Assembly (NCBI GenBank): GCA_965649825.1 | Contig: OZ287701.1 | Coordinates: 671,101 to 735,100, forward strand | DNA length: 64,000 nt | Source of the DNA: Penicillus capitatus | Lineage: Eukaryota > Plantae > Chlorophyta | Direction of reading: 5' to 3' | In this document: positions 9,484 to 40,700 of the stretch, in pieces | Position numbering within the stretch: the stretch's first letter is position 1 | How the letters are laid out: the number at the start of each line of letters is the position of its first letter | Notes under the pieces: model-generated | Seen by the model: the letters and a program-made list of their open reading frames with translations, nothing else | Databases searched by the model: none | What the model was told of the DNA's origin: nothing | Made by a program: the position numbers and the translations under genes

Positions 9484-10950
9484 TCATCGAGGGACGATCT
9501 GAGAAAGATCACGCATGCGGCCTTTGATGGCTTTCTTGCGAGTCTCTGTGATACGTCGGCTCTGAAGAAAGCAATCAAAGGCATCTTGACCACTTGAGTT
9601 GAGAAGCTCCCTATCAGCTCCGTTCTGTACCAAGACCTACAGGGATAACAACGATGACATCTTGCTCTGGCGTTTGTGACCTCACGACCTCCGCAGCTTC
9701 GCAGCATCCATAGTGGTAGGCTAGATGGAGAGGCGTCCATCTTTGATCGTCTCGGATATCGAGTATGGCACCGGCGTCGATGAGAACCTACAGGGAAGAG
9801 CATTATCCGAGGAGAACGTAGGGGTAGAGTGAACGTTAAGGGATTCGACGGAGTTGTGTCGGGCTGCAAGGTGCAATGGACGCTTGCGTTTACTATCGGC
9901 TGCATCCACCTCGACCCCCTTGTCGATCAATGCCTATAACGAATAACATCACAGATGAGACGCGCAATGTCTGTCGTCTCTCCTCACTTGACAAACGTAC
10001 TGGTAGTTCTGTTGCGCGGCAATGTGCAACGCCGTTCTCCGTTGGTCGTCTAAAGAACGAATCTCCGACCCGGCATCGATCAGAATCTGTATGGACTGTG
10101 GTAGAAATGGAGAGATGGTGGATCCCGGAGGTCACCTGAGCACACGGCAAATGATCATTCCACAATGCGTGATGCAGAAGTGGACACTTGAATCGACCAG
10201 ATGCCGTTTGATCAAGCACCTACATATCCGACACCTCCAACGTGATCAACAACAACACATCCACGATACAGACGACCTCATTGTACACAATGCCGGCGTC
10301 TTGGAGGAGGGAGAGATCCTAAAGCGTTCAGATTCCTTCGATTCATGAGATGCGTGTGTGCAAAGACACACATGCTTCAGCTGCTCGACGGTGTTCGCAA
10401 GCGTGTTTTTCGCCTCCGTGAGAGAGCGGTTTTCTCGCTTGGCGCGATCCAGTCTTTGAATCAGTTCATTGTTTTTCGCATGCTCTGTTTGATAAGACTG
10501 CCGGAATTGTCGACAGCTTTCGTTGCTGCTACTGGCTTGAAGCCGCAATCGGCACACCTCCCACTTCAACTCCTGCTGTTTGCCTCGCCCACAGAGAAAG
10601 ATGTGACAGGTGCTTGCTTTGAGAGAGGTAGGCAGATCGTCATAAGCAGCGACATCTCTAACAAAGATCTATCATCGCATCGGATCGTAACGGACTCACG
10701 GTTGACCTTGGAGGTTCTGCCCCTTTTGGCGTGTGAGCGTTTTTCGAGTGGCGGGAGGCATCGACGATACACCCCAAGACGACGAGAACAAAAAACAAAC
10801 CCGTGCAGCAGAGGAAGATGAAGAAAAGGAAGTCAGAAAAGTCGCCCGACATATTGGCGCGTTTCGACGTCGAATACAGTACAATGCATCTCGCGAAGGA
10901 CTGTTTAGACTGGATGCGACATGTTGCATTTCGCTTTCCATCTGCAGGAC
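9484..10950 (-). CDS. Coiled-coil plus C-terminal ankyrin-repeat protein, multi-exon, 5' end uncertain (may extend to about 12.4 kb)
   Basis: Spliced ANK repeats RTALHIAAQQN, KRPLHLAARHN and WTPLHLAYHYG. Upstream coiled coil EHAKNNELIQRLDRAKRENRSLTEAKNTL. TGA at 9484-9486. Confidence 0.75.
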
Positions 10951-13900
10951 AAAATTCTGGTTGCATCGCTAGAATAGTAGATACAACATATATCATACGC
11001 GTCGAGCGGGCATCCGCCTTCGTCGCCATTTCACTCGATAGTCTTTGCAAATAAGATGCTTAGTAGCTATCCGTCCGTTGCTGTGGTGCATCGTCGAGTT
11101 ATTCCTACACAGCACGCTGCCTCGATGGATGACGGTTGACACAAGGAGCACTTGTAGAACAGGTAGGTGGGTGGTTCTCAAAAATAAAATCACTCGACGG
11201 TGCTCGTAGCAGTCCAAAACGCCTTTTGATCTAGCGGTTGTGAAGTGAGCGCAAGGATGCTTGTGGTGGGGAAACGGTCTGCATATTGCGGTCTCTTGCT
11301 GGTTCTCAGTCACTGGCTAGCATGACACGCGTTTCTGCGTTAGCCGTGTGGCTCAACAAGACGAGGCTTTTCCTTTGCCCTTCTCGTGGAAAACAGGTAA
11401 CGAACGTCGCTTCGGGAAAGCTTCGGTCATGGTGTCATGACCACAACGTACGAACAAACTTGCAGCTGACAGGCCGCTAAATGTCGACGCTTGTGTCTGG
11501 CGAAAGAGCTGGCGCAAGTCTAGATCGAGGACATTAAGCGACGTCTGCATATTTGAGCGTATTGTAAGGCCAATGCCGTCCACATGCAGGGAGAGAGAGA
11601 CTTGAGCACCTGCTTAAACAAACCAACGGTCTGTTTCTTGGTTAACTGTGGCTGCTCGTTAAGTCCCTACCTAACATTCCCGTTTTTGCACCGTCTTGCC
11701 AGTTCCAAGAATGGCATCACAATGAAAAATTCCAGACCAGCCGCTTTCTCACAAGACAGCGTTCGAGGCTGCAGTTTTTTTCCTTTTTAAAACGTCGGAA
11801 GCTTCGTGGAAGAGATTCAAAAGATCAGAAGCGATACCGACTTCGTCGAAGGGAGTCGAAGGATGAATTGAGCATCACTTCTCTCGTTGTGTCTAGTATT
11901 ACTACGCTTTGGTTCGGCTTTTGCTAAGGGAATGCACAAGCAGCGCAGCTCCGTCCTTATTTTGAGCGGAATGTGGGTAATGCACTTTGACGATTCGTCA
12001 CCGTCTCACCAGCCGTCTCCGAAGTCTTGAGCGTGCCGTACAAGTCCTCAAGTTCCTTCTCGGACGCGGAGCACTTTTTAGAGGCCGAGAACGGTTATTC
12101 AGTAAACGGCAAAAAGGACATGTCCGCAACTCTGACCGTCCTTTGACTCTGCTCCGTCTTTTCAATAGTCAGGTGATCATTGATCCTGAACAGCAATAGA
12201 GTCTGCGGCCAGATCTGCGTCCACAGGAGCATTGGAATGTCGCACGGGTCCTCAAATCTCCGATGCCAAAGATCCCATCGAGACGAAAGAATATCTCGAC
12301 AATCTGTGGATGTTTCAGTCAGATATTTAGCACCTGGAATGGAGACCTTGCAATGTGTGCATTGCAAAATGCGATTCGAAAGGAGACGGATGGAATCCGC
12401 GCACGATCTGTCCAGTTGCCATTCATTGAATGAAGATTAGCGTTGTGACGACTATACGAGATCTTCCTTTAAGAGGAACAAAGTGCCAACGACGATGACA
12501 GCCCTTATCTCAGCGACGCATTTATAACCACTCGCGAGGACAGTCAACACCAGAGACAAAATCAAAATGATCCGAAAAGACAGGGAGGTTCATGACTGCT
12601 CGGTTACTTTGCAGAAGCGGTCTGAGCTCAGGAGACACGTTGAAACGGTTATGTTTCAATATGGATGTCATTAGTTTGAGCTTCAGTGGACAAATTGTCG
12701 CCTACTCTTGTATTTCGTTCAGAAAAGCAGGCCCTGTAATGTTTACATGTTTATCAAATGTTCCTCTGTCAAATCATGTTGTCTCCATGATAATTCAGTG
12801 ACGCGTACTGCAGACCATGATGGAGTTGCTTGCAGCAAAACTAGCAGACTTCGGCAACAAATATGACGCAACGGGGATAGATGCGACAGCATTGCTTCAC
12901 ACGAGCAGCCGCCAAAATGCATTTCTGAATTAAAACCAGATAAAGCGAAGAAGCTTTTATAGAAAACAAATGCCACACTTCAAATGAAGGAGATCGACGA
13001 GTGTCATCCTTCAGAGTGCAAGGCAAGGCTTTGACACTATTCTCCTTTTACTCCCATCCTCTCAAACTCCATTTGTTGGTAGTTCTTGACGCAATTCTCA
13101 ACTCCCGTTGCAAAATGCTGCTTTCCTGTCTTTCTATACGGGATGCGCTATGCAGCTGCTGACCCGTTGTTCGCGAACGAATGTACGCAATGAGTGGTGC
13201 TTCCTGACAGGATCAAGCTACGTCGTCGGAAAACGTCGACATGTCAATACTGCTGGCTGAACAGTTCGTACCGGACATGAGAAGTCGCACTCACCCACAC
13301 AGCGATCGCAGTCTTTCTCACAGATGGTCCATCCACACACGCACTCTAGATGGCAGTCTATTTCGTCCAGCTGTCGTTCGGCATCTCTGGCTCCTCGATT
13401 ATCGTCGACGGTTTTGTCCGACGAAGGACAGGACGGCTGCCCACAGAGACGCGTATCTCTCCTTCCAGGTCTTATCAATTCAAACCACACGATCGGCTAT
13501 AGCCATCATATTTCTCTCGGTGATCTTGTGACATCAGCTTCTTCGTCGCATCCCGCTCCCGCGGCAACCACTTGTCAATTGGGCCTCGTTTTGTCTTGCA
13601 TAGATAGCGCCCTTTCATCACTGTCTTGTTCCGCGGCACTGTTGGTCTTCTCAGTGAACTTGTCGGTAGGCGTCACGTCATCATCGGCCTTTTGATGCTT
13701 GACGTAGCCTGTCGGTAGTGTTTGATGCAACTCCGAAGTCGAAACTTGCTCTTCGCCATGATTGACACACGGTCAAAAGACGCCAAGTGCGAGTTTAAGT
13801 TTGAATTGAGCCCTGAAGAAATCAAGGTCGCTGACGTTTCCCTCTCTGCGATAGCATCCAACCGAACATCGGCCGCTTTGCATCATGTAGGCTGACTTCG

Positions 13901-15589
13901 ACAAAATTGTTGCCGGCATTGAGGCGTTTAACAAGACGCTTCGACTGCAGAAAGCATATCGAGGCATCGAGAGGAAGTGAATTACGCGCCGCTTGTGAGA
14001 AGTCAAAATATCGACGTGCGATGTTTAGGACGTTACAGCCTTCAGGATTTGATTCGAGAGGACCTCCGCACCATCACGTGCGTGATTAGTTGGTATTCTT
14101 GTCAAAGACAAGGTGTCTTTGTGGGTGGGGATACGTTCAAAGCACGTCTTCTGCTATGTGAATTGACGTGACGTTTGGGCTTTTCCATGACGCCATGCGC
14201 ACGATAGTGGTGATGCGATCGCGACTGTATCATCATAAACACCTTCCGTAGATGTCGATCGTTGTCTTGCGTAAACGATTGCGTTGCCAGGCTGTGACCG
14301 CAGCAAATTCGATGAGAAATCTGATGACACACAGGTCTAACGAACCTTCGTACGATGTACATCGTTGCTGCGATTGATAGACTGATCTACTCTGTTGTCC
14401 TACACGGAGAACCATTTTAAGAGATCATGACAAGACTGCAACATCACGGGGGCGGAGATGGGACTTGTTCTCATTGGTGAACAGTGCTTTGTATACGATG
14501 TTGGCATCGGATTGCATTAGCTAAAAATCGAAGCGGCAGGGCTCAGCGACATGTGCTTAATACTCTCGTTTGGTTCGATGAGATCAGTCGTATTTCTTTT
14601 TAGATCAATCGCTGCAGGTTGATTGTACAGGATACATGGACGATCTACGATGGACAAAACGTCTGAATGGCGATTGAACGGTGATAAGCTGGTGTAGATG
14701 ATGTGCTTGAGGAACAACAACGAAGGATTGAGATGCGTTCGACGCGCTGACTCGACGAGGCTTGCGACATGCAGGCATCTGAAACTGCAAATAGAAGACA
14801 GCGCATGACCCTGTTACAGAGAGACATTATTTCCTGCTTAAAAGTTATGAACGGAGAATAGAATGCAAGCTACAGCAATTAGAAGTAATCGATCGAAGCC
14901 GAGCACAAAGGACTGACTGAGCTGGGAATTAACGTACAAAAAACTAAGAACCAAGAGATTTGCAATTTCATAAGACAGAAACGAGAGAACCGGCCACTTA
15001 CTCGATATTAGTCGAAACTGACGCGTCTTCGACTGTTGCTGACAGAATGAGGAATGGATTAGGAATGTGAAGTAGTCGTTGCATTGAGCTTCTTGAACAA
15101 TAATAGTCCATTTCAGTGTTTGAGGATCAAGAAAGAACGGAATCAATGTGGGAAGAGTGGGTCGCGGATGACAATTATGGCACGCTGCGATAATAATCTC
15201 CTCAACACCCACAGTAATCGATCGCCACGGATCAGGAATACTGTCGAGCACACGCGCTATTCTTAAGATCGCAAACTGCACTTATGCATCAAAATCGAGG
15301 GATTTGAAAAGCCTTCTCATTATACCATTAACGTGAACGTTACGTCCTAGCAAGCTTATCGACGAAAACAGGGACAACCTAGGAAGCTATTCTTTTCCAC
15401 AAAAGTTTATAAAATCCACGCACGACTTTATCGTATTTACGCAAGGCGCAGTTCAAGAGAAATACCTAGGCATTTAACTTGTTGCAGATTTAAACTCTTG
15501 TGTTATCGGACCACAGCTTCATTGGACAGTGTACATTGTCAATGTTTTACTCTAAGGAAAACAACAATGCTTTATTTGTTGTAAGACCG

Positions 15590-16015
15590 ATGTCGATTCG
15601 CATCGATTGAAATCGAATCGATTGTTGTTGATCGGCTTGATCGTATCGATTGGTTCTAATCGGAAACAAATTCGATCGATCGGTACCTGTCGATGTGGCG
15701 ATAGAATCGATCGGCGTCGATCGGCTTGATCTGATCAATCGGTCCATGTCAAAGTGAAGATCGAGTAAATCGCTCTCAATCGAATCGATCATTTGGTTCC
15801 AGTCAAATGGATATGATCGATCGACGCTAATCGAAGAGCGAATTCGATTGATCGATGCCTGTCAAAGTGAAGATCAAAACGCTCGCTGTCATCGGCTTGA
15901 TCTGATCGATCGACGCTAATCAAAGTGGAGATCGAGTAGATCGCTATCGGTCGAATCAATCGATCGTTGTTTGTCGATCGGATTTGATCGATTTGTGTCG
16001 ATCTAAATCGGAATG
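15590..16015. repeat. ATCGAT/CGATCG-rich island with internal 20-45 bp duplications
   Basis: Repeated GTCAAAGTGAAGATC (about 15747 and 15861, variant at 15919), TCGGCTTGATCTGATC (about 15721 and 15892) and GATCGATCGACGCTAATC (about 15815 and 15904). Confidence 0.8.
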
Positions 16016-17749
16016 TTCTTTAATTCGTCAGTGTCTCCGGTGCAGGACACTTTCAACAGACAACATCGAACGGAATTCGAGTCTTGGAGAGATACTCTCG
16101 TAAAGGCTTTTTCCAATACAAGAAGAAAGAAAGGAAATCAATTCTGGATCAAGATACTATAAGTAAGCCTTTTTCTTCTAACACGTATCTGTGTTCATTG
16201 GGCTTGTGATGAACGCTAAGAAACACGGGGGGAGTCACTCGAAGAGATTAGTTAGAGAAGAGTTGCCATTGGGTTTTAAGATGAACAGAACTGAAGCGGA
16301 GATGCAAAACGCATGCTTGTGTGTGATAAGAGTGCGAATGAGCAGTAGTTATTAGATCGGCTTCGAGAATTGGAAGAAAGGATCATTCAAGCAGCAGAAC
16401 AGACAGAACTTGGAATGCGATGCGAAAATCCATAGAGAGAAAGCCAGAGATCGCTATTGTCGAATCATCTAACTGATCAGACACATGACGCTTATACGAA
16501 AGCGCAGTGAAAGAGCATAAACTGCTGAATTTATTCATCATCATTCCTCATCTGTTAAAGCAGCTGCAAGATCTAACAATAAGGTATCCTTCCCTTCTTG
16601 CCTTACTGATTTCGCCAACTGCTGCATTTGCTGTAGCTTGGCGAATAAAGCGAATCGTTGATGACATCAGCTTTGGAAAGAAACACAGCAGCTGGAGAGT
16701 TTGTCAATGATGACATGGAGAAATGTGCAGAGAACGATCAGAAAGACTAACTGGCAAAGTCGGCCGTTTGCATGTAGTAGTCAGCATTAAAGTTAATCTT
16801 CGATGCACGTGGCAATCGCGAACGTGATCGTCAAAAGAACGAATGATGACCAGAGATCCGATGCTGTTATTTGCTTCCTCGGTATCTCGATTGTCTTATG
16901 ATCAAGAACATCTTTTCTTGTGCACCACGTATCTATTAAGCCTCTGTGATATATCCATTCATCTTCGCGAGCCATGCGTCCTTCTCTTGACCGTCCGAGT
17001 TCGAATGCCGGGCAGCTGCTGTGACTAAATACAGCACACTTGGCATGCAGATCAGCAGAAAAGTCGGCGACAACAATGATCTTGTTCACCTTTGCCGAGA
17101 ATACAGTGCTTGCGCCTGCTACTCAGCAGGGAGCAATTGATGGCCTGGGATAGACGATGTGTAGACCAGTCATTGGTGTTTTGCAAATGGCAGGCAGTAA
17201 ACGGCCTGGCGGTAATCATGGCTATAAGGGTGCCATCGATCGCTTTGCATATTTGGCACAGGGGACGCGCATCGTGTGGCAGAGTTCAAAAAACGGCTGC
17301 GGTGTTTATTAAATCAAACACTGAGAGGTAACCAGACGGATTCAGAGAGTCATGCAAAATCTCTAAAACTTATGCCGGAAAGAATGTGATCAGCTTCTCA
17401 TCTGCTTGTTAGACAACGCCTTCGGATGGGCAGAGGTCTGCCACACAGTTAATCATAACTTCGTACAACGGCACTTGCTTGAATCCTCTGCATATCTTAG
17501 TGTCATAGCATAAGTCCCATGCGGCAACGTCTCCATCTGTATACAGCCACCTCTTTCGACACTTGACTAAGTAGATCCAACAACGTACAAATATGGCAAG
17601 CCGCGGTTATGCACGTTTCATTATCAGAAATATTCTCGTAGACGTAGTCAGGTTCAGCTATGTACCTCTCACCCAGAAATGCTTCTACACAGCCACAATG
17701 AACAGATGATTTCGCGAGACTGCCATGCCTTGATTCGCGGATCCTTCTT

Positions 17750-21200: not shown

Positions 21201-21756
21201 CACGACTGAATCACATTCACCATCCTCGAATCGCTGCGAACATTGATTGCACTGAGACCTATGGTGTTGTCACATTTTCGATTATACCTCACTGTGCATC
21301 GAGTCAGAAACGAAGTTGGTAAACGTAATCTCATGGATCCTTTGTAGCTCATGCCGGTACCAGAAAGTTTTTTGGCAAAGATACGTACAACAACCGCCTT
21401 ACAAACAACATGGATCGAAAACGAATCTTAATTTACACACGGATTGTCCAAGACATTTCATAAAATATATCAAGTATTGAAGGTCCTCCCACCGCAAGAA
21501 TTGGATTTGCATATAGTCCTGTCTTTTTAAATATTTAGCAGTTATTTCTAAAAGAATAGACACGCTCCCAAAGAGATGGCGTGCAGAACGAACAACTGCC
21601 TAATACGTCATGCGGTCTTAAACTCGAGATTCGATTTCAAAGCGTCGGTTAGGATGTGGCCCAAATCGTACAGATGGCGAACAAGCTTTGCAGTGCATCG
21701 CTGGTTTTTGCATTTGAGGCGTCGCAGCTCTTGATTCCAACATCTGCTTGTTCCTC

Positions 21757-22556
21757 ATGACGAAGCATGTTTGTGCGCCAACCGCTCTGTTCGTTTTCTT
21801 GCTCCACGTCTCAATCGCCTGGTCAGAGAAAGTCCCTTGCTCAGAGGATGCTATCTACGAAGTCCTTCTAAAATGCCATTGGACAGACGAAACACACCCG
21901 ACGGATTTTCCTACACGAAATCCGCACTTCAGTGCGCTCTGCGGTACAGTGCACAACGAGGCATACACATTGTGGACAATTGGCGGTATTTCCACGCCTG
22001 GTGTACGGGAAGTGGCCGAATATGGCTCTTGCGCCACGTTGGAGGAAGAAATAGCATCCTGCGACGAGGATGGCAATTGCGACGCTGATGGCTATTTTGA
22101 ATGGGATTGCGACTACAGTGGCAGTTTAAAATCAGTATGTCAGTTTTCTGGCAATCTCACACTCAAGACAGATTATCGCTACGTCTCTATGATGTCCATG
22201 CTGGCCCCATCTCCGGACTGGAATATTGGCATCGATTCTGCTAACCTCTGTCGATCAGGCAAGCAATTCTTTGTATCGGAGATCGATAGATGACCCCCGC
22301 TGTCCCTTTTTCTTCAGATAACGTGACAGGAGAAGAGTACTGGATGAGACAGTATCCCGAGAATGGAACGTTGGATCTGATGGCTTTCGATGCAGGAACA
22401 AACGGAGGAATCAGTTTTCAGTCGCCTGTTTTCGGATTGGATCCATACGTGCCTATGACGTACTTCGATGCTCAAAATGCTTCGAATATATTCTTTCACA
22501 AAACAGAGAAGAAGCTCCACCCCATTTGCAAAGCGAAGTTGATGCTTCGAAACTGA
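21757..22556 (+). CDS. Secreted Spondin_N (F-spondin/mindin FS domain) protein, one intron
   Basis: Signal peptide followed by HPTDFPTRNPHFSALCGTVHN, TPGVREVAEYG, SMLAPSPDWNIGIDS and AFDAGTNGGISFQSP. Confidence 0.85.
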
Positions 22557-24122
22557 TGTCCAATGCATCGTCGTGATCGAAGGACATCTGCTGCTTTGAA
22601 GAGAGTGTTCAATAAATGTCCATCAATCCTACTGATTCAAACAATCAGTATTCTGCATAGCTCTGCGTGATCATGTCATACATGTGATTGTTTTATTGTT
22701 TCTATTGACACCAGTCATTAAAAATGTCTTGAAAGTACTAGACGATGACGAAACGGTCGGTTACTTCGCATCTTGCATCGACCAAAACAATGTAACGTGG
22801 CTACGTGTCGTCTAGAGAAACGAGAATGATGTTTTTTCCATGTACCACATTATAGGAAGAAAAGCTGCAGAACATCCTCTACGACGAGGACGATAGGTGA
22901 AGGCTGTCTAAGCAAACGATGTCAGGATTTCGACGGGGCGCACGCCCATTGCTGCCCGAACAATAACGATAAGATGGTCTTCTTCGCAAGAAAAAAATCC
23001 AAACCGTGTGCAATTAGTAGTTTAAGCACAGGGCAAAGGGCAGATTCATTAATGGGGCACTTCTGTACTTGCCTGTAGCAGATCGAGATCAGAACTTTGC
23101 CGAATCTGACTCGATTTCAGTGGTTTTCCCTTAGCATCTGATGATAATTCGACATATTCAGATCGTCGATATTCGATCCTATCGTCCAGATTGGTTTGCA
23201 CATGCGACGCATATTGGATCCTGAACAAATAGAATATGTAAAATCCCCGCAGACTTGCAGTGATGGACACGCAAACGATAACAAAGCACAAGGTCGGAGA
23301 GAATATGCAAGAGACAAAAAAGCGTGTGAGCGACCATAGAAGAATCAGTGTCGATGTGAAGAACCTCGTCTTTTACGGAGGTTCATCTGACAGTCGAATC
23401 TTACGGATCTCCGTGATCAACCAGGTGAAGATGACAGAGAAGACGACCGCTTGCAGCCTTGCGACCTTCACGCTTTTATTACTTGCATGCAAGAGTCATG
23501 AAAGGATTCCAACGGAGAGGGTTGCGTCGACGAAGTCAAACGCTTACGCCACAACTCCGATATCACATCTCACCTTGTACATCGCCCGACCGCAGTGTGT
23601 GCATTCCCTTTGCGTGCACACACTTCTTATAACCTCGGGCTTGGAAGCGGTTTAAGTTGCCATGGAGAATTTCAGTCCGGGGCCCAATCTGAATCGCCTG
23701 CGCCGTAAACGTCACCGGTGCTTTTGCGTCATACGCGTTGGGGAAGAGTAGAACCATCATTGTGAATGTTTACAACGCGAAGGATAATGTGACTATTCTT
23801 TCCGCGCTCAGCCGCTGTATGTTTCTTCAATGTGGACTCCTGCGAGGTAAAAAAAGATGCCTCACATCAACGCGGCTGTTACAGAGTTCACGTCGTGCAT
23901 GGATGAAAGCAGGCTCTCATTAAAATTACAACGAGAATTTCAAACCGCCTTTGATCTATCTCAACATCACATCACTCCGCCGATGATAACTCTGAAAGTC
24001 TCTTTGGCAGAGGTCAGTTGCACCGCACCGACACCTTTGGACCGTGGAAGACAGAGTCCGATGAACACGGTAGAACTTACAATTGGTTCAGCCGACTCCA
24101 CGAGAGACCGGAGATGGACACT

Positions 24123-25103
24123 TGGATGGACATCATTGCCCAGGGACATAAAGGACATTGGGGCTTCGAAAAGACAAAGAAAAATGTCGAGTAGGACTAT
24201 GGCACGCTGCCTGGATTGGCAAAAGATGTCATAGTATTCGTTGAAAGATGTGATCGGTGAAGTTCACGGTAGCAAGCAACACCGAGATCCACCTCGAGTG
24301 GAAATCTCTACGGAATTTGCGAGGACAGAATGTGTATGGATATCGCAGGTCCGTTTCGAGATGGACAATACTTCCTCGGCTTGGTCGATTCGGCAACACG
24401 GTGGTGCGAAGCCGGTGGTGTACTTGCACGACCACGTACGGATCAGATAATACCCATCCTTGAACGTTGGGTGCAACAATTCCCACGAAGACTTAAAACC
24501 ATTACCGTAGACCATGTCCAGGTCTGGCTAAGTTCTCAATTTCGGCGCTGGATAGCGGCTCACAAGATAGATATCACGGTCATACCTAGCTATTATCCGC
24601 AAGGTGTGAGTCTAGCTGAGCGTGCCATTGGTACTATGCTCAATCGACTGCGACGTTTGTGTGATGGAGATGTCGAAGACTGGCCAAGGCGTCTACAAAA
24701 GGCAGTCCATGCCTATAGTACTATTTGGCATCGCGGGATCGATTCCACTCCCATCACCCTTGCTTACGGACTAGATTGTAATCGACAAGGACTGCCAGTA
24801 GGGACGGTCCGAGATGAAAGATAGCATGCACTAGAGGTTCAAGAGCAAGCGAAAGCATACATGGAAGAATTTTACTGTCGCAAGCATTCACGTCTGTCAA
24901 AGCCGTTACAAGTAGGTGACAAAGTCTTAGTGTATGATCCTACAGCACGGATATCACGTAGGAAACTAGAATACCCATGGTTTGGCCCTCTGAAGATTGT
25001 AGCACATTATTCAAGATCGACTTGGATTGTGAGGGACCTGGCCGCAGCCGATCGACAGTTTTTGGTACATTCATCACATCTTCGAAGTTACCACACAAGC
25101 TAA
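24123..25103 (+). pseudogene. Retroelement integrase (HHCC zinc finger, DDE core, GPY/F-like C-terminus) with four in-frame stops
   Basis: A single frame reads GHKGHWG...CDR*, MDIAGP, VDH, AERAIG and KLEYPWFGP...VHSSHLRSY. Stops at 24192, 24258, 24270 and 24822. Confidence 0.9.
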
Positions 25104-25118
25104 AGGTGACTGGGCCCA

Positions 25119-25287
25119 TGTTGTAAAGGCCGCAAAGAGTTCGAAGAGATCGGTGGGATCAAGACGCTTAAAAACCGTACGACTATAAAAACACATCCTG
25201 GTGTGTAAACACATTCTAACTTGGTTCGCATAAAAAGCCTTCAACAATACCCGCAAGGTCTGTCCGATCTCATCCCATCAAACAACA
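25119..25287 (+). repeat. Putative 3' LTR of the degenerate element
   Basis: Starts 15 nt after the integrase stop, has a 6-bp terminal inverted repeat TGTTGT/ACAACA and a TATA-like CTATAAAAA. Its length is close to the 167-bp LTR of the neighbouring element. No second copy in the window, so the boundaries are inferred. Confidence 0.6.
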
Positions 25288-25354
25288 GTAAGGAGACGTT
25301 AGTAAATGGTACGCTTTGTGGATAAATCTGCAGTTCTCTAGCGCTAAACCGTTC

Positions 25355-25660
25355 GATTTCGATCTGTTCGATTACTTTCGTTCGAATAATCTAAGTCAAC
25401 TGAACCGAAATTGAAGATATCGAAATGATCGTCGCGATGCAATCGGTCAATTGCGGATCGATTCGATACGGGGTCGTCATAGGTTTAATGGAACAACACC
25501 TCACGCGCGATTTCGACATCGGTACTTTTGTTCTTCGAATTTTACTAATTGATAGAAGGAGATCGCTCGAATTCTCTATTCGATCAATCGCTTTTATGAA
25601 ACATCTGAATTGGTTACAAACAAAGTAGACAAAGTGCTCAAGAACCGATGTAGAAGACGG
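25355..25660. repeat. Dispersed repeat copy 1 (homologous to 31133-31445)
   Basis: Shared blocks TCGTTCGAATAATC, TTGAAGATATCGAAATGATCG, TTGCGGATCGATTCGAT, GATCAATCGC and AGACAAA...CT.AAGAACC occur in the same order. Confidence 0.8.
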
Positions 25661-25906: not shown

Positions 25907-27516
25907 ATGGAGAAGTTGTTCGAGTGCATTAGGGAAGAAAGTGTCGTTCCCGAAGGATTGTCGAGAGAAACTCTTGTACTTGCTCCGGACGATTTTTACA
26001 GTGTAGTTGAAATGACCTGCTTCACATGGCCGCTGTTCTTCGATGTCAACCTCGACTCCAATCGACTCATCGCAGCGCTGAAAACACTTTTACGCAAATA
26101 CCCTTGTCTCTGTGGAAGACTCTGCCCACACGAAAATCTGCGTTTCGTCATCGAGGTATTCGTAAGAGCCAGTAAAGCCATAGAAAGACGAATCATTTTT
26201 TGGCAGATTTGCCCAGAGAAAGAGGACTGTTGTTGGATTCCGTTTGAGGAACTGAAGTCGGACATGTCGATAGCGACAGCGATTACAAAACATAGCAAGC
26301 TCCAAAGCAGGACAGCAGATTTTCCAGTAGTTCCCGATATTCCTTTCACGATGGACATCATCGACCACGAGAAAATGATCATGTAATGGTCACTCGGAAT
26401 TCTTTTCTAGAGTCATGGAGTTGGTTGTGCAGAGGAGAAGCTCCGATGACGAAGTTTCGCTTGATACACTTTGCTGACGGCTGTTCGTTGACAACTACGA
26501 TTTCTCACGTTTTGGTCGACGCTCAGCGCTGTATCGAAATGGTGGTCGATCTAGGCCGCGCTTACAGAGGCCTAGAAGTTCCGAATCGCAATCACGATCG
26601 CTCTTGTTTGTGGCCGGATCAATTGGCAAAGCATTACACGTTTCTGGGAGAAGAGATTGCTGATCTGCCACGAGCCGCCAGTCAAAACAAAGAAAAGATT
26701 GTCTCCGATCAATATCCCGAAGAAGGCTGCGTACAGGAGGCCCTGTACTTCAGCAAGGTTACACAAATGCGATCTCAAGCTGTTCTTCAATGTGCTGTGT
26801 AGGAGGCCCTGAACAAAATGAAATCCATTGCGAGACCGTTTCTCGCCGAAGGAGAATATCTCTCTGCCAATGACTTGCTATTTGCTTTTGTGCTAATGCT
26901 TAAGTATGAGGTGAGTGGAAGAATAAGCGGCGACGGCTCGTTCGATGTGACAGATACTGTGGCCGCTTGCGCCGCCGAGTGTCTTACAAATGGAATACAT
27001 GTCTTTCCAGAGAATTATGTCGGCAACGGTTCGGTGACGATATCCTTGTCCATACAAGGGCTGGAAATCGAAAGCAGATCTCTGTGTGAAGTCCTTGTCA
27101 CTTTTGCCAGGATGATGCGGAAAGGCATCACAGACTATAGACAGCAACCAGAGCTCCAGGCTCAGGCGTTCTTGAGCACATACTACACCGTTTTTACAGG
27201 AACATTACCTCCGGCGACAGAATCAATGGTGTCCTTCGTGTCTAACGTGTCGCGTACACCGTGGAACGATGTCGATTTTGGCAAAGGACCTCCAAGAATG
27301 GCAAAGCTCATAAACCTATTGCCGTTCACCGGCGTTCAGACAACATTTGGACCTGCTCCTGGAAGAGACAGTGGAGTCCTTGTGTACGTAGTGTTTACTG
27401 ATAGCCAGTACGCCAAGTTCAAGAAATCGAGAGTGGTACAGACAATCGCCCCAGACATGAAGCTCTTCTATTCTGAAATTACGACGGAGGAAGTGGATAC
27501 CATGCTCAAGTCCTGA
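25907..27516 (+). CDS. HXXXD-type (BAHD-like) CoA-dependent acyltransferase, about 3 introns
   Basis: LLRKYPCLCGRL, catalytic HVLVD, SANDLLFA, YVGN and DVDFGKG (DFGWG-like) motifs. Confidence 0.85.
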
Positions 27517-28889: not shown

Positions 28890-29107
28890 TCGTTGATTTG
28901 TTCGATCGCTCATCGATCGATGTCGAATTGTACGATCGGCGCACGTTTTGGCGTCGTCGATTTGTTCGATCGCCCGTCGATCGATTTCTAATCGACTTTG
29001 ATTACGATTCGACGACTACCACGACGGCGGGATTTGATCGATCGATCGATCGATTAGGAAGAACGAATCGTCGATTGGAGATGAATGACGACACGTTTGT
29101 CGAAACG
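28890..29107. repeat. CGATCG-rich island interrupted by the LTR element (continues about 30699-30790)
   Basis: Dense TTCGATCG/GATCGATCGATCGAT runs on both sides of the insertion. Confidence 0.7.
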
Positions 29108-29274
29108 TGTCAGAATGACTAGAGCAGTCACATCGTGACTGCCTAGATTTCCGAGGGTTCTGTCTCCGAGAGGGCACTTACTAAGGGTTTACGTCACCTC
29201 AGGATCCTTACAAATACGGGAACGTGGCCCTGTGGATACCTTGCTCTGTAACACAGTGAAGATTTCCCCTGACA
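29108..29274 (+). repeat. 5' LTR
   Basis: Identical by eye to 30527-30693. Confidence 0.95.
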
Positions 29275-29286
29275 TGGTTTCGGAGC
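29275..29286 (+). promoter_or_regulatory. Primer binding site, tRNA-iMet-like
   Basis: TGGTTTCGGAGC immediately after the LTR; 10/12 match to the plant iMet PBS TGGTATCAGAGC. Confidence 0.75.
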
Positions 29287-29429
29287 TGAGTCTACGCTCC
29301 TTTGTTTGAACTCCGTCTGTGTGACGTTACGCGTTTTGCTGCGTGCTTTACGCGTTTTCCTGTGTGGAACTCGAGACCTGTCTAGACGCGTCTAGGCATA
29401 TCTAGGAATTTCAAGAAGCCTCGACAAGG

Positions 29430-30455
29430 ATGAGTCGAGCACAACCAAGAGAGCAGGGTCAAACAGAAGAGAGAAGGAGTAGCTTATACGGAACGTATCA
29501 ACTGGGTGATTATGGCTTCGTGAATGTCATCACTGAAGCGGGCGAAGACGAAAACTGTTTCCCTAAACTGAGGGGACGCCCGGTGTTGACGCAGCCAGAA
29601 GACGTTGTCGACGATGCGTGGTACTGGTTGGTGGATATGAATAAGATGAAGCGTTTTCTCGAGCGGATTGGCGCATGGGTACGGGAGAGACGTGACCTGC
29701 CGCAGAGGCTACAGGAAGAAAGACAAGCGAGTGATGGACTGCGGCGCGAGTTGACCGCAACAGGTGAAAACCTCACCAATGCACAAAGGGCGTTGCGCGT
29801 GGTTCGCGCGGAAAAGGAAGAATTGCTGAAAAGCCTGCAGGAAGAGCGGCGAATTAACGAGAAACTGCGAAGAGACATCACTGAGGATGTCCACCAGACC
29901 AAACACGAAGTGGACAAGGCCCGCATGGAAGCCTTTTCTCTCCAAGAGAAACTCAAAGAGACAGAAGCGGCCTTCACAGAGGCAAAGAACAATTTCATTT
30001 CGGCCCCTGATTTGGTGTCAAGTTTATGGTCGCTGACCAAAGAAGTAAAGACGGTGCAGAAAGAACTGAAGACGAATTTTGAAAAGACAGCTGAGGTGAT
30101 AGCGACGAGACCAGTTGTTGGACGACAAAGTTTGAGGACGCTGCAACAAATGAAACGGGTGCTGCATGACATTGGACGGTATCCGCAAAGACGGCGAACG
30201 AAGACTGACGTGACAGAAGACGGTTTGCGGAAAGTCAAGCGTGGCAGAATCTGTTATTTCTGCCGGTGCAAAGGACATCTGCTTCAAGATTGTCCGCGGA
30301 CGCGTAATGCGGATACGGCCGAATCAGCAGCCCCAGATACGTCGTATACTCAACTACGAACTGAGGGTTCACCGGAAACGACTGAAGAGACAGCATCAAC
30401 GGGTTGGAACGTCTTTTCGATTTTTAAAAGGACATTTACCTCGGGAATCGACTGA
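29430..30455 (+). CDS. Gag-like protein, 341 aa (coiled coil plus CCHC zinc knuckle)
   Basis: Intronless ORF inside the LTRs. CYFCRCKGHLLQDC fits CX2CX4HX4C, and there is a long heptad-rich central region. Confidence 0.85.
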   Translation: MSRAQPREQGQTEERRSSLYGTYQLGDYGFVNVITEAGEDENCFPKLRGRPVLTQPEDVVDDAWYWLVDMNKMKRFLERIGAWVRERRDLPQRLQEERQASDGLRRELTATGENLTNAQRALRVVRAEKEELLKSLQEERRINEKLRRDITEDVHQTKHEVDKARMEAFSLQEKLKETEAAFTEAKNNFISAPDLVSSLWSLTKEVKTVQKELKTNFEKTAEVIATRPVVGRQSLRTLQQMKRVLHDIGRYPQRRRTKTDVTEDGLRKVKRGRICYFCRCKGHLLQDCPRTRNADTAESAAPDTSYTQLRTEGSPETTEETASTGWNVFSIFKRTFTSGID

Positions 30456-30491
30456 ATTTTTAATTGTCCATTGGTGGGGGGGTTTCCTGTC

Positions 30492-30526
30492 TTCGGAGTT
30501 CCGCGCAGCGGAGATGAATGGGCCCA
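30492..30526 (+). other. tRNA-iMet 5'-half-like sequence in place of a polypurine tract
   Basis: TTCGGAGTTCCGCGCAGCGGAGATGAATGGGCCCA(T) versus plant iMet ATCAGAGTGGCGCAGCGGAAGCGTGGTGGGCCCAT (recalled). It abuts the 3' LTR. Confidence 0.65.
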
Positions 30527-30693
30527 TGTCAGAATGACTAGAGCAGTCACATCGTGACTGCCTAGATTTCCGAGGGTTCTGTCTCCGAGAGGGCACTTAC
30601 TAAGGGTTTACGTCACCTCAGGATCCTTACAAATACGGGAACGTGGCCCTGTGGATACCTTGCTCTGTAACACAGTGAAGATTTCCCCTGACA
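30527..30693 (+). repeat. 3' LTR
   Basis: Identical by eye to 29108-29274. Confidence 0.95.
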
Positions 30694-31132
30694 AAACGCT
30701 ATCACCGTCGATCGTCATCAATCTCACAACCGGACACACACAAAAAATCTCGATCGCATCAAAACACATCGATCTATGCGATCAGAGAGCCCCAAAGTAT
30801 CATGCTGCTTGCGGTTTCATGCGTCAAAAAGCCAGCAAAAGATCACTAATCTCGGTTCAATCGGCAATATTTCTGTAAAGATATAACTGCGGCTAATCTA
30901 TTATCCCTTCTGATTTCCTATTCATGTTACTGTTAGTCTGCGCCACTTGCTATCGTTCTTTGCTTTAATTTGCGCCGATGTCTTCCTTCTCCCTGCTGGT
31001 ACCAGTCTTTGAGTCTTCGTATTACATGTCCGGCGAAGGTTGGACGTCTAACACAACACATATTAGATGTTCCTTTTGCTCCTGATTATGGGTATGCTGT
31101 CGATGGATTCGGATGGCAGATCGTAGTTCGTG

Positions 31133-31445
31133 CGATTTCGATTCAAATTCGCGTGTAGTGTCTAGCCGACCGTATCGTTCGAATAATCGAGGTCGGCCGA
31201 ATCGTGTTTGAAGATATCGAAATGATCGACGTGATGCGATCGGTCCTTGCGGATCGATTCGATGCGGGGTCGATCATAGGGTCAATAGAATACCTCATGC
31301 CTGATGCGAAATCGGTGTTATTGTTTTCTGAAAGCCGATCGATAGGAAAAATTTGTCGAATTCTTTCTTTGATCAATCGCCTTTATCGGACGGACTTCCG
31401 ACTCCGTCCGAACAAATTAGACAAATCGCTGAAGAACCTGAACAG
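31133..31445. repeat. Dispersed repeat copy 2 (homologous to 25355-25660)
   Basis: Collinear shared blocks with copy 1. Confidence 0.8.
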
Positions 31446-37779: not shown

Positions 37780-40700
37780 ATGGCGTACCCTCTGCATTTC
37801 TGCCGATGCTTACTGATTCTAATGCTCTGCCGTCCGATTCTTGCCTCTTCGGAAAGAGAGGAGAGCTGTATTCTTGATATCTTCCATGGATCACACCTTG
37901 CAATTCGATGCACTGGACCAGAAGAGATTGAAGAAGTATTTGACTGGGTAAATGTGACGGCACGACGGTCTTCTCCTATCGACATCGCCCCTGGAATACA
38001 ACTCTTTGGCGAAGTAGCTGACACAGGACAACGCACCTTTTTGCACATAGAAGATAGAACGCTGGAAATCAGCACCAACATGATGCCAAGCGATCGTAAG
38101 TCACGTCGTTAACAGAAGGCATGCGTATAAGAATTCTGTCCAGTGCTTGAGGCATGGGATGTCCAGAGTGCGATTGCTGTTGTGAATTCGACGGTATGGC
38201 TGGTGAGTAGCACTATCTACCCGGCCAATTCCACATCCATTTCTGGAGGTGAGTCCACGGACAGACACGAGATGTAGCTAGAGAAACTGATCGTGGTGAT
38301 CTAGGTCTCTTTGTTTCGAAATCGCATCTCATTGTCGAAGACTGTCAATTTTACGGGGAAGCTGCTTTTGAGAACAGGAATGAAGCTGGCGTTATTCGAG
38401 CGACGAATGGCTCGTCGGTGGACATTCGGAATTCGAATTTCAAAAACGTCGGCAGTGATGTGGCAGCGATTTTTATTGATGGGGAATCCCATCTCACTGT
38501 TGACGACTGTTCATTTGACGGGAATTTTTCCTCCAAGAACGTGGGTGAAGCTGGCATTGTTCGAGCAGTGAATGGCTCGTCAGTGGACGTGCGGAATTCG
38601 TATTTTCAGGACGTCAGCAGCGATGTGTCAACGATCGACATCGATGGAGCATCCCATCTCTTTGTCGACGGATGTTCATTTGGTGGGAAGTTTTTCTTCG
38701 CAAATAAAAATGCGGGAATTGTTCGAGCAACGAATAGCTCGTCCGTAGACGTCCGAAATACGAATTTTCAAGACGTCAGCAGCAATGGAGCGGCGATTGA
38801 CGTCCAAGGAGTGTCCCATCTCACTGTCGACGGTTGTTTCTTTCGCGGGGATCCTGCTTCTCTTGAGAATGGAAAGAAAACTGGCACAGTTCAAACAGAA
38901 AATGCCTCTCCAGTGAACAAGCGGAATGCGAAGAATCCAACCACTAAGTATGCGTATGAAGCTGGCATTGTTCGAGCAACAAATACATCTGTGGTCGTGC
39001 GGAATACGAAGTTTCGAGATGTCAGCAGTCACGTGGCAGCGATTCACGTCGTTGGGAAACGGCATCTCGATATCTCTGTCGTTACGTTTGCAAGAATCAC
39101 AGGATATCAAGGTTCCGCCATCTATGCCACAGATGGCAGCAGTGTTCGAATTGCTAACTCCTCGTTCTCTGGCTGCGATTCGTCGATGACGGGCACTGTC
39201 ACGATCGAGAGTAATGCTCTTACTCCATAAGTTCAACGTTTTGCTCATTTGCATCGCAGATGGAAAGGAACTGAATATCAGCGGAAGTACTTTGATGACG
39301 AGCAAAGGTGTGAACGGAGCAGCGGTGCATGTGCGGTCTCCATCAGCAGTTGGAGATCTGAACAACTCGGAAAGCGATGTCATGAAGCTACGCATATCCG
39401 ACAGTGACGTTCAGGCGAACGCTGCGACGGAGGACGGAGGTGCTCTGTACGTCTTTGGGGCGGATCTGGAGATAACGCGTACTCAGATCCTTGGAAACAA
39501 AGCCAGCGATCGTGGAGCTGGGCTTGCTCTTTTCGAAGCCAGAAAAGCGACAATCAGAGATTCTTCGGTCGAAGACCACTTCTTTCAGAGCACCAGCATA
39601 TGGTTTGAGCAAACAGGAGCCGGAATCTATGCCGAACTCGTGGAGAGCTTCATTCTAGATAACTGTACCCTTAGAGGCAACAATGCGATCAAAAAAGGCG
39701 GCGGTGGCTACTTTGTGTCGCTTCTGAAACTGGAGATTCGCAACTGCAATATTACGACAAATCACGCGAGAGAAGAGGCTGGATTGGGAGTCAAAGATGT
39801 GAAGAACGTCACTGTCATGAACACGAATGTCACGTCCAATCAGGCCAGTAACTTCGCAGCAGGCTTGTCCTTTCTGGAGACCATGGATTTAACGCTGCGC
39901 AATTTGGTCTTCAGAATGAACGAAGCTCCCAATGTCGGTGCCATGTCAGCAATGTCGGCGAGCAATGTCTGGATGGAAGAATGCACTTTCAGAAACAACT
40001 ATGCCACAGGCGGCGGCGCGGGTGCTCTGAAGCTCATGGCTGCGCTGAACGTCAATATCACTCGGACGAAGATTCTCTTCAACAACGCAAAGGGCGAAGC
40101 GGCTGGCATCTTAGCTGAAAGTGTGGATGACATGACGATCGATGCATCGGTATTTCGAAGAAACGAAGCGCACAGTGGAGCCTCGTGCTTGATCCGTCTA
40201 GCCAAGGCAGTGTACATCATCCAGTCTCGGTTCCGAAACAATCGTGCGACAGATGGAAGTGGAGGTGCTCTCTTTGTCGAACAGGTCGACAGGGCATTCG
40301 TAACGCAGTCGAATTTCTCCTACAATCAGGCACAGAGCGAAGGCGGGGCCTTTTCGATATCGGGCACTCCTCGTGTGAGCTGCATTCAGACGCGCTTTAT
40401 CCAAAACAACTCCACGATGGGATCTGCCGGGGCCTTCGCGGCCAAGCTGATGGACAATGTCTTCCTCCGAGGGTGTCGTTTCTATCAAAACGGTGCTTTC
40501 CGTGACGGAGGTGCCGTGAGTCTAGCAAGCGTCTACAATGAACTAGAGATCATAGATTCAGACTTTGCTGAAAATGAAGCTACTGGGAGGCAAGAATCGC
40601 AAGGCGGAGCTATTGCTGTCTTTCTCTTTTCGAAAATGAACATCGAACACTCAGCATTCAGGAACAACAAAGCACGTCTGAATGGAGGGGCCATAAGTCT

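Follow-up and report, generated by a model that had tools for sequence, protein, structure and literature searches.

An initiator-tRNA-like motif at the 3' LTR boundary of a retrotransposon clade: a candidate atypical plus-strand primer signal

Introduction

Priming from a polypurine tract (PPT) is the standard mechanism of plus-strand synthesis in retroviruses and LTR retrotransposons. Gag-encoding non-autonomous LTR elements are internally deleted derivatives. A PPT lies directly upstream of U3, is enriched in purines, defines the LTR start with its 3' end, and is retained by non-autonomous derivatives; the Ty3 PPT (GAGAGAGAGGAA) is not homopolymeric like that of HIV-1, and its cleavage depends on the fit between the RT and its own PPT (PMC5371799).

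In copia and Ty5, 5' halves of initiator tRNA-Met (iMet) that end in the anticodon loop are established primers, and the minus-strand primer-binding site (PBS) next to the 5' LTR consists of the complement of the tRNA (PMC5371799). In Ty3, the iMet primer makes contact with the 5' PBS as well as with sequences at the genome's 3' end; in this bipartite arrangement, U3 holds the complements of the T and D arms (PMC5371799). TRIMs with tRNA- or 5S-derived LTR promoters also exist: the Helenus, Cassandra and Ajax elements ("TRIMp3"; Kojima 2024, PMC10886601) are non-autonomous, need autonomous partners, generate 5-bp TSDs, and carry a small-RNA-derived sequence inside the LTR that supplies a Pol III promoter.

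Here we describe a sequence of about 38 nt that directly precedes the 3' LTR in two elements of a 64,000-nt stretch of contig OZ287701.1 from Penicillus capitatus (hereafter the window), together with its counterparts in related elements. We found no prior description in the literature of the PBS string of these elements or of tRNA-type plus-strand priming.

Results and Discussion

Two elements in the window share a sequence next to U3

Positions 25081-25121 span the point at which the internal region of a dead Ty3/Gypsy-type retrotransposon, element A, meets its 3' LTR; this copy is 5'-truncated and internally deleted. Downstream of a host Spondin_N exon (21718-22553), a forward-strand relic of the N-terminal, protease-side part of pol that precedes the RT (23582..24069; tblastn of amino acids 4-166 of the pol of an intact relative, L002, 52-61% identity) is fused to a decayed integrase (24099..25103, forward strand), and the RT and RNase H are missing between them. 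The integrase retains an H2C2 zinc finger, an rve core with a Pfam match, a GPY/F-like PWFGP and the C-terminus ..LRSYHTS; it is 76% identical to P0001 and 60% identical to P0002, and is broken by in-frame stops at 24192, 24258, 24270 and 24822 and by a frame change. Its end overlaps the long form of the pre-U3 motif (TTCGAAGTTACCACACAAGCTAAAGGTGACTGGGCCCA, 25081..25118, forward strand), which aligns to its counterparts in element B (30492-30526), L001, L002, L008 and L009-outer. The overlap with the last integrase codons reported in an earlier note on this DNA is real, as the first 23 nt of the motif double as these codons and the stop (25101-25103). The motif abuts a 3' LTR relic of about 128 nt bounded by TGTTG..CAACA (25119..25246, forward strand). 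Similarity to the orthologous LTR of L001 stops at ..CCTTCAACA(AT), window positions 25246-25248, and the length of the LTR is therefore probably 128 nt. This is the sole LTR copy of element A in the window, where blastn with a word size of 7 and 25100-25400 as the query detected no second one, and a 5' LTR was likewise not found in L001. What had been described as a second LTR element is thus a relic, consisting of a pol fragment, a stop-ridden integrase and a single LTR.

Element B is a gag-only element on the forward strand. Its 5' LTR (29108..29274) and 3' LTR (30527..30693), bounded by TGTCAG..CTGACA, are 167 nt long and 100% identical, and are flanked by the TSD AAACG (29103..29107 on the left and 30694-30698 on the right). 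Between them lie the PBS TGGTTTCGGAGC(T) (29275..29287), which is common to the whole clade, a gag-like ORF of 341 aa with a coiled coil and a CCHC knuckle (29430..30455), and the long form of the pre-U3 motif, TTCGGAGTTCCGCGCAGCGGAGATGAATGGGCCCA (30492..30526). The earlier figure of 167-169 bp for both LTRs thus fits element B and not element A.

Both motif stretches are present as the earlier note had quoted them, and the alignment of 25081-25121 with 30492-30529 yields 31 identities over 41 positions (z ~7.8), a score reached by 0 of 5000 shuffles. The window has just two copies of the string TGGGCCCATGT, one at the A junction and one at the B junction, compared with about 0.55 occurrences expected even when one mismatch is allowed. 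In both elements the LTR starts directly after TGGGCCCA, a perfect 8-nt palindrome. This boundary is confirmed by the intact L002, whose LTR pair (3190-3367 and 9596-9773; 178 nt, 99% identical, TSD AAAAG) includes a 3' LTR that begins right behind ..GGTGGATGGGCCCA; the same arrangement in L008 and L009-outer also backs the LTR start at 25119. An LTR pair together with a 5-bp TSD fixes the boundary not only in B and L002 but also in L009-outer (TCGTC), L009-inner (TTCTC), L010 (AGTGC) and L011 (GCAAG).

One difference between the two copies, CCACACA versus CCGCGCA, had been attributed to CpG deamination. This cannot be shown: CCACACA is also present in L001, so that the change is older than the window copy, and the CpG observed/expected ratio of the window is 1.09, yet the window copy shows an asymmetry in CG to TG/CA changes (23 versus 5).

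The motif is conserved across the clade

We compared 16 junctions, comprising 14 elements with both LTRs and two truncated relics, sampled from three autonomous lineages (integrases 28-76% identical) and several gag-only lineages. A related motif adjoins U3 at all 16, either in a long form, ..GGAAGGTGGATGGGCCCA directly before TGT, or in a short form, ..GGGAAGCG(TGG) directly before TGT. At the other end of the internal region, the PBS TGGTTT[C/A]G[G/C]AGC adjoins the 5' LTR with a spacing of 0-1 nt in all 14 elements with both LTRs. In pairwise comparisons of gag-only lineages, the LTRs are 49-51% identical, which is the random level, the 60-nt leader 75-97% and the 3' UTR 61-74%, and the identity of their gag proteins falls to 38-44%. 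The string TTTCGGAGT, located 22-37 nt upstream of U3 and the same as the PBS core, is invariant in all gag-only lineages.

A reading without any cis function would explain the similarity by shared coding ancestry of the integrase C-terminus plus chance. In the A lineage, CTTCGRAGT indeed encodes the conserved L-R-S of the integrase end (..QLRSYH), and this protein motif is kept in relatives as LRKYY, LRLFY and LKKYH. The motif is also found, however, in gag-only elements that have no integrase, across lineages whose LTRs have diverged to the random level, and none of the shuffles reached the A versus B score. It also occurs in autonomous elements with integrases only 28-35% identical to that of L002. 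In L009-outer, the integrase (..AHSSQLRLFYT) stops about 146 nt before the motif, and GGTGGATGGGCCCA nonetheless adjoins U3; coding ancestry alone is therefore no explanation, and the motif is non-coding in this element and in every gag-only element. We regard this reading as extremely improbable. In L009-inner, TTCGGAGT lies downstream of the L-R-S codons, so its position may not be homologous to that of TTCGGAGT in the gag-only elements. Taken at the level of sequence conservation, these results support the proposal of the earlier note that the motif is a clade-wide cis signal rather than an accident, and integrase-bearing relatives of the kind that it suggested mining do carry the motif directly before U3.

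The gag-like ORF of element B has 26 homologues of 190-505 aa (mostly 320-400 aa), and all eight retrieved with their surrounding DNA belong to elements without pol. Like known gag-encoding non-autonomous LTR elements, B possesses LTRs, a PBS, a gag-like ORF and a pre-U3 signal and lacks pol; unlike them, its gag-like protein has no detectable kinship to the gag of L002, the only intact A-type autonomous relative found. Because the two proteins share only the zinc knuckle, we rejected an origin of B by simple internal deletion of an A-type element.

The motif had also been proposed to point to the type of autonomous partner that mobilizes B. This is partly supported: the motif and the PBS would single out the present clade as the helper of the gag-only elements, but the A lineage differs from B in its termini (TGTTG..CAACA versus TGTCAG..CTGACA) and has an unrelated gag, so that A is not demonstrably the partner of B, and no other element was found that could be named as its specific autonomous partner. 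The PBS and pre-U3 motif together may serve as a signature tying non-autonomous elements to their helper clade despite unrelated LTRs and gag.

The motif resembles the 5' half of initiator tRNA-Met

The motif follows the iMet 5' half collinearly and in the sense orientation, from the D arm to the anticodon; in element A, the local match covers iMet nt 14-35. Using the human iMet sequence (PMC8216282), a reference that was chosen after the motif was seen and that may differ from the tRNA of the host, the mean local score over nine lineages was 24.7, compared with 12.5 +/- 1.2 for shuffled sequences, and 0 of 200,000 shuffles reached 24.7. Counting the post hoc choice of reference as about 200 implicit hypotheses, p remains below ~1e-3. 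The reverse complement, the iMet 3' half, the elongator Met tRNA and a Lys tRNA all scored at the null level, so the tRNA-half-like character noted earlier is specific to the sense 5' half of the initiator, as judged with the human reference. It is the family-level statistic alone that is strong, since 0.1-0.3% of random 80-nt windows match human iMet at least as well as single copies of the motif do. ARAGORN predicted no tRNA genes in the window or in eight other loci, and the 254 kb of sequence covered overall yielded no tRNA gene. Rfam scans with gathering thresholds and E-values, one of them on a stretch that ends at the anticodon, likewise returned no tRNA match; half a tRNA falls below the length that the generic model can pick up.

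This resemblance raises the question of whether a host tRNA itself takes part in priming. A 5' fragment of host iMet, which would be an anticodon-cut 5' half in long-form elements and a 5' tRF about 25 nt in length in short-form ones, would anneal to the minus-strand copy of the motif, and its 3' OH would start the plus strand at the first base of U3. The sense orientation, the collinearity and the significant similarity to iMet nt 8-35 would fit such a primer; moreover, the boundary of the long form falls inside the anticodon, between CCCA and U, where tRNA halves are cut, five lineages match iMet without a mismatch over the 9-10 nt of TGGGCCCA(T), where the 3' end of the primer would lie, and the long form has no clean PPT. 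The precedent of copia and Ty5 involves the same iMet 5' half beside an LTR boundary, but the geometry differs: after the 5' LTR, where those elements carry the complement of the iMet anticodon stem-loop, the clade has TGGTTTCGGAGC, a conventional TGG..-type site for a different 3' end (..CGCUCCGAAACCA), and its iMet-like block stands in the same sense before the 3' LTR. If true, host-fragment priming would make the motif a "plus-strand PBS", the mirror image of half-tRNA priming.

The recently active lineages, whose LTR pairs are 99-100% identical, speak against it. In L004-L006 the sequence reads TGGGACCA, which places a mismatch 4 nt away from where the primer would end even though the LTRs are 100% identical, and TGGGCCCA, the anticodon-stem part, is absent from L007, L010, L011 and L009-inner. 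In its middle part, the motif bears only a loose resemblance to a tRNA. In addition, 2',3'-cyclic phosphates are generally present on tRNA halves, and pairing is disturbed by bases such as m2,2G26; this chemistry argues against priming by a host fragment. We consider such priming unlikely, but the sequences described here make it directly testable.

A related idea was that the motif and the PBS represent the two strands of a single tRNA acceptor stem. The motif and the PBS core TTCGGAG behave in this manner, which would also favor a host primer, and a single tRNA with the acceptor UUCGGAG/CUCCGAA and the anticodon arm CUGGGCCCAUAACCCAG would, if it exists, mean that PBS and motif were copied from one molecule. 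In human iMet, however, the corresponding stem is AGCAGAG instead of TTCGGAG. The AGCAGAG stem is conserved in animal initiators, and the T loop to which a conserved leader box is complementary is of the elongator type (GAGTTCAAAC) and not of the initiator type; for these reasons, we demoted the idea to a lead. A regular-expression search of the 254 kb for a tRNA gene with the acceptor TTCGGAG/CTCCGAA or the iMet anticodon arm returned only the PBS regions of the elements themselves.

Because TTTCGGAG repeats the PBS core and is invariant in the gag-only lineages and L009-inner, the motif might alternatively offer the tRNA that primes the minus strand a second place to dock, in the manner of a Ty3-like bipartite PBS or a genome-cyclization signal. 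The repeat would bind the 3' acceptor strand of the primer, and the tRNA-like remainder would invade the stems of the primer and join the RNA ends; CGGAGTT can pair with the leader box AACTCCG. Ty3, too, has iMet-related sequence close to the PPT/U3 junction, at the 3' end of its genomic RNA. Those segments are complementary to the tRNA and lie in U3, whereas the motif is of the same sense as iMet, with the reverse complement scoring at the null level, and lies just upstream of U3. PBS variants (L002 TTTCGCAGC, L009-outer TTTAGGAGC) are not accompanied by co-variation in the 3' motif, and L009-outer lacks TTCGGAG altogether. No conserved RNA hairpin was found in the motif, for which the RNAalifold consensus reached an unconvincing -3.5 kcal/mol, and docking leaves the exact abutment to U3 unexplained. 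This alternative appears unlikely.

A further possibility is that the D-arm-like part serves Pol III as an A box, as in TRIMp3, or that the GGGCCC palindrome is an RNA dimerization site. Element B has a string resembling an A box (CGCGCAGCGG), and TGGGCCCA is palindromic. TRIMp3 are characterized by A and B boxes inside the LTR (PMC10886601); here the tRNA-like piece lies outside the LTR, comprises only half a tRNA and is also carried by autonomous elements. B-box-like sequences with up to 2 mismatches were found in 0 of 8 LTRs, A-box-like matches are missing from the motif in most lineages, and the short-form lineages lack the palindrome. A promoter or dimerization function is thus very unlikely.

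A candidate plus-strand primer signal

Our preferred interpretation, held with moderate confidence, is that the motif would be a tRNA-derived, imperfectly purine-rich plus-strand primer signal, which the gag-only elements would need in order to borrow RT and RNase H. The role in plus-strand synthesis, suggested by position and conservation only, is the most likely one, and the motif most likely represents an unusual variant of a known signal that is common to the whole retrotransposon clade.

Against a background of 9.1 +/- 2.4, purines account for 11-14 of the last 18 nt of the motif, and for 10 of 18 in the L003 copy, which has an additional TCCA. The long form reads GGAAGG-T-GGA-T-GGG-CCCA, with T residues breaking the purine run and CCCA between the last G run and U3, and thus departs from a canonical PPT, in which purines continue without a break for some 8-15 nt up to U3; the short forms, ending in GGGAAGCG, come nearer and look like an ordinary PPT. 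The motif also differs from a PPT in belonging to a block of about 35 nt collinear with the sense iMet 5' half and in overlapping the integrase stop in some elements. Because the purine-rich core can itself be an imperfect PPT, the absence of a PPT is not established.

We propose that the ~38 nt before the LTR act as a lineage-specific cis signal, kept by autonomous and gag-only members alike, which probably arose by an ancient capture of tRNA sequence, for example when RT switched template to a packaged tRNA during minus-strand synthesis. It would now be the atypical PPT of the clade: after minus-strand synthesis, RNase H would spare the purine-rich RNA core of the element itself, GGAAG(G/C)GTGG(A)TGGG(CCCA), and the 3' end of the spared RNA would set the first base of U3, after ..CCCA in the long form and after ..GGGAAGCG(TGG) in the short form, TGT following in both. 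Retention of the motif by the gag-only elements would reflect their dependence in trans on the RT, RNase H and integrase of autonomous clade members, and in those autonomous elements where the motif overlaps the last integrase codons it would be under a double constraint. The recent lineages that have TGGGACCA or lack TGGGCCCA are easier to reconcile with such a self-templated primer than with a host RNA of fixed sequence to which the element must pair. The role as a PPT does not explain why TTTCGGAGT is invariant in the gag-only lineages. If this ordinary reading is true, the clade would provide a well-documented case of a functional PPT departing far from a purine run. The resemblance to iMet suggests that tRNA sequence can be captured by RT and converted into a replication signal.

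Classification and distribution of the clade

Four features, namely LTR termini, TSDs, pol order and PBS, would place the clade among the Ty3/Gypsy-type elements. The LTRs are bounded by TG..CA with short inverted repeats, as seen in B, in L002, L008 and A (TGTTG..CAACA) and in L009-inner (TGTGAG..TTGACA), the LTR end of L009-outer (..GTGATA) being an exception. TSDs of 5 bp were found in B, L002, L003, L009-outer, L009-inner, L010 and L011, and in L002 and both L009 elements RVT_1 is followed by RVT_3/RT_RNaseH and then by Integrase_H2C2 and rve.

A profile search with the integrase in JGI metagenomes and a search of metagenomes for the PBS-leader DNA pattern gave no match. Among 5.8 billion proteins, homologues beyond the query numbered 5 for the integrase and 1 for the RT. 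In a sequence search of the PDB, the nearest matches of the RT were the RTs of foamy viruses, caulimoviruses and gammaretroviruses (E values of 1e-22 to 1e-16), followed by that of Ty3 (8e-12).

As a separate observation, the host domains Spondin_N, Kazal, NACHT and trypsin look animal-like.

A shared motif at two LTR junctions

Positions 25081-25121 of the window, which read TTCGAAGTTACCACACAAGCTAAAGGTGACTGGGCCCA followed by TGT, span the start of the 3' LTR of a decayed LTR retrotransposon (element A, 23582-25246) and align with positions 30492-30529 in a gag-only LTR element (element B, 29108-30693). The likeness described in the earlier note was reproduced, with 31 of 41 columns identical, a score reached by none of 5,000 shuffles, and TGGGCCCATGT occurs only twice in the window, at these two junctions. 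The left third of the alignment may reflect coding similarity instead of positional homology, because CTTCGRAGT encodes the conserved L-R-S of the integrase end in the lineage of element A, and an autonomous relative (L009-inner) carries the same protein motif (LKKYH) followed by TTCGGAGT. In element A, the first 23 nt of the stretch are integrase C-terminal codons with their stop (..HLRSYHTS, stop at 25101-25103).

Element B is bounded by identical 167-nt LTRs (29108-29274 and 30527-30693; 100% identity, TGTCAG..CTGACA ends) and a target-site duplication (TSD), AAACG. The primer-binding site (PBS) TGGTTTCGGAGC lies directly 3' of the 5' LTR, and an ORF encodes 341 aa with a coiled coil and a CCHC motif.

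Element A is a relic. A pol fragment (23582-24069) matching aa 4-166 of the pol ORF of an autonomous relative, L002, directly adjoins the integrase from its zinc finger onward (24099-25103), which indicates that reverse transcriptase (RT) and RNase H were deleted. The gag and 5' LTR are missing, and the integrase contains in-frame stops at 24192, 24258, 24270 and 24822 as well as one frame change. No second copy of the sequence 3' of 25119 was present in the window. This sequence is homologous to that following the same motif at a related locus, L001, and the similarity stops at ..CCTTCAACA(AT), window 25246-25248. The LTR is therefore most likely 128 nt (TGTTG..CAACA), shorter than the 167-169 nt first proposed from a later CAACA at 25287. 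Against the L001 relative, the integrase relic (24102-25250) shows 23 CG-to-TG/CA changes on the window copy and 5 in reverse, a hint that this copy decayed preferentially at CpG sites; the window has a CpG observed/expected ratio of 1.09, with no global depletion. Just 5' of the relic, host Spondin_N coding sequence occupies two adjacent frames on the plus strand (21718-22553).

Relatives and conservation of the motif

The clade is rare in databases. Searches returned 5 integrase homologues among 5.8 billion proteins, one RT homologue apart from the query itself and 26 homologues of the gag-like ORF, and JGI metagenomes scanned twice for clade members gave no match. Every relative comes from two ENA assemblies, and the comparison covers the ends of these elements.

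Three relatives are autonomous. L002 has a 178-nt LTR pair (99% identical), TSD AAAAG, PBS TGGTTTCGCAGC and ..GAAGGTGGATGGGCCCA before the TGTTG of U3. L009-outer has TSD TCGTC, PBS TGGTTTAGGAGC and ..TTGGCAGCGGACATTAGGTGGATGGGCCCA before TGTCAC, and L009-inner has 199-nt LTRs (100% identical), TSD TTCTC, PBS TGGTTTCGGAGCG and ..TTCGGAGTTTGTACAGGGAAGCG before TGTGAG. Their integrases share 35% (L009-outer) and 28% (L009-inner) identity with that of L002. The remaining relatives are pol-less elements of 1.0-2.6 kb (L003-L008, L010, L011 and a 1-kb minus-strand element in L001), all with PBS TGGTTTCGGAGC. Each bears either a long form of the motif, TTCGGAGT..CGCA..GGAAGGTGGATGGG(C/A)CCA, or a short form, TTCGGAG(T/A)T..GGC(A/G)GGGAAGCG(TGG), directly before TGT.

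Judged from these alignments, the pre-U3 motif is under constraint as a cis element. LTRs of different gag-only lineages are no more alike than random sequence (49-51% identity) and gag-like proteins fall to 38-44% identity, while the first 60 nt 3' of the 5' LTR retain 75-97% and the 3' UTR 61-74%. The motif abuts U3 at every junction compared, a boundary for which LTR pairs and TSDs give independent evidence. It cannot be due to integrase coding alone, since the gag-only elements lack integrase and in L009-outer the integrase end (..AHSSQLRLFYT, then stop) lies about 146 nt upstream, yet GGTGGATGGGCCCA abuts U3.

Resemblance to initiator tRNA

With human initiator tRNA-Met (iMet) as reference (PMC8216282), the motif follows the 5' half of the tRNA in the same order and the same sense, matching in the D arm (GCGCAGCGGAAGCGUG) and in the anticodon stem-loop (CUGGGCCCAU). 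In the long form, U3 begins within the anticodon, between CA and U, and the short form stops at about tRNA position 25. Taken singly, copies rank no higher than the best 0.1-0.3% of random windows of 80 nt. At the family level, the mean score was 24.7 against a null of 12.5 +/- 1.2 (null maximum 22.9), and none of 200,000 shuffles reached it; because the tRNA was shuffled, kinship among elements does not inflate the score. Even after correction for the roughly 200 combinations of tRNA, half and strand that were implicitly open to choice, p is still under about 1e-3. The reverse complement of iMet, its 3' half, and the halves of elongator tRNA-Met and tRNA-Lys all scored at the null level.

The likeness would fit best with an ancient capture event, for example by a minus-strand template switch onto packaged iMet. 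Base 37 of this tRNA carries a bulky modification, and the captured copy would begin 5' of it. The motif's first 7 bases, TTCGGAG, are also the PBS core (TGG-T-TTCGGAG-C), the pattern expected if PBS and motif had been copied from opposite strands of a single acceptor stem. This idea is only a lead. The acceptor stem AGCAGAG is conserved in animal initiator tRNAs. The human initiator carries it in place of TTCGGAG (PMC8216282), the motif does not covary with PBS variants, and the complement of a conserved leader box (GTTTGAACTCCGTCT) is GAGTTCAAAC, which resembles a T loop of the elongator type. The box lies about 30 nt past the PBS in gag-only 5' leaders (window 29288-29330; L003-L011) and can base-pair with CGGAG in either the PBS or the 3' motif. 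It may extend the PBS or act as a signal for cyclisation.

A probable plus-strand primer site

The last 18 nt of the motif contain 11-14 purines in all copies but L003 (10/18), against a background of 9.1 +/- 2.4. Purine enrichment is thus moderate, and the claim that a polypurine tract (PPT) is absent was not established. The block is probably the clade's plus-strand primer site, at which a purine-rich core of the element's own RNA would survive RNase H and its 3' end would set the first base of U3. Such a role would explain why the motif is indispensable to elements that use a borrowed RT. It is consistent with what is known of Ty3, whose PPT is unlike the homopolymeric PPT of HIV-1 and whose cleavage precision depends on the RT matching its own PPT (PMC5371799).

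Alternatively, a host iMet 5' fragment could anneal to minus-strand DNA and itself act as the plus-strand primer. The sense orientation of the motif, the boundary inside the anticodon and a perfect match over the 9-10 nt where the primer would end fit this testable but low-probability reading. Against it, the L004-L006 lineage, with 99-100% identical LTRs, has TGGGACCA, and other lineages with equally identical LTRs lack the anticodon-stem part. Readings of the motif as a second docking site for the tRNA, as in Ty3, as an A box for Pol III or as a palindrome for dimerisation are unsupported or contradicted.

The closest known object is an ordinary PPT, of which the motif would be an unusual, tRNA-derived and partly coding variant. 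A half-tRNA PBS of the copia/Ty5 type is ruled out, as the motif lies on the wrong strand and at the wrong element end. A Ty3-type 3' PBS segment is unlikely, as the motif is same-sense and upstream of U3, and it is no Helenus/Cassandra-type Pol III promoter, as the LTR does not include it and a B box is missing (PMC10886601). In the literature searched, no account was found of a tRNA-half block in sense orientation where a PPT would lie. Apart from the corrections to element A, the observation behind the earlier note was real, and its reading as a family-wide, tRNA-half-like cis signal largely right.

Candidate helper elements

The common PBS and pre-U3 motif tie the gag-only elements to autonomous members of the clade, in line with the proposal in the earlier note. 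Both motif forms occur in gag-only and autonomous members (long in L002 and L009-outer, short in L009-inner), and this same-form pairing suggests that signal and RNase H co-evolve. As a pointer to the helper of element B, the motif leads to the clade; B's particular autonomous partner was not recovered among the relatives found. A-type termini (TGTTG..CAACA) match the gag-only L008 (TGTTG..CACAACA), element B has TGTCAG..CTGACA, and the A-type gag is unrelated to the element B ORF. Over its last 38 nt, the B LTR is 87% identical to the L005/L006 copies.

Other features of the loci

The minus-strand element of about 1 kb in L001 (2350-3353) has the clade PBS and the short-form motif, and its leader repeats GGGAAGCGTTGC, resembling its own pre-U3/LTR junction. 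L009-outer lies within a satellite of about 95 nt (L009 7200-7552, 17649-17831) and is interrupted at 11449-16137 by a minus-strand autonomous element of the same clade with 100% identical LTRs. The intact A-type element of L002 contains a nested repeat pair (6299-7920; copies of at least 300 nt that are 100% identical and 1322 bp apart), which lies within a larger pair (454-11445; copies of about 600 nt separated by 10.4 kb). The ends of both pairs lack the PBS and the motif of the clade. A B-type copy in L003 has four additional bases, TCCA, separating TGGGCCCA from the LTR (10090-10101) and an insertion of about 1 kb between 5' LTR and ORF, probably post-insertion mutations.

Within the window, each of the two elements is followed, a few hundred bases further 3', by a copy of a dispersed repeat of some 270 nt (25378-25646 and 31175-31438; 74-81% identity). 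The ORFs overlapping its copies show no protein similarity to each other, and the repeat may belong to the host, stem from duplication of an intergenic segment or mark a preferred target. The window also has a Transferase-family ORF (26818-27513) and two tandem arrays, one at 38385-38852 with three units (about 165 nt each, 72-77% identical) and one at 15720-15992 with two (171 nt each, 75% identical).
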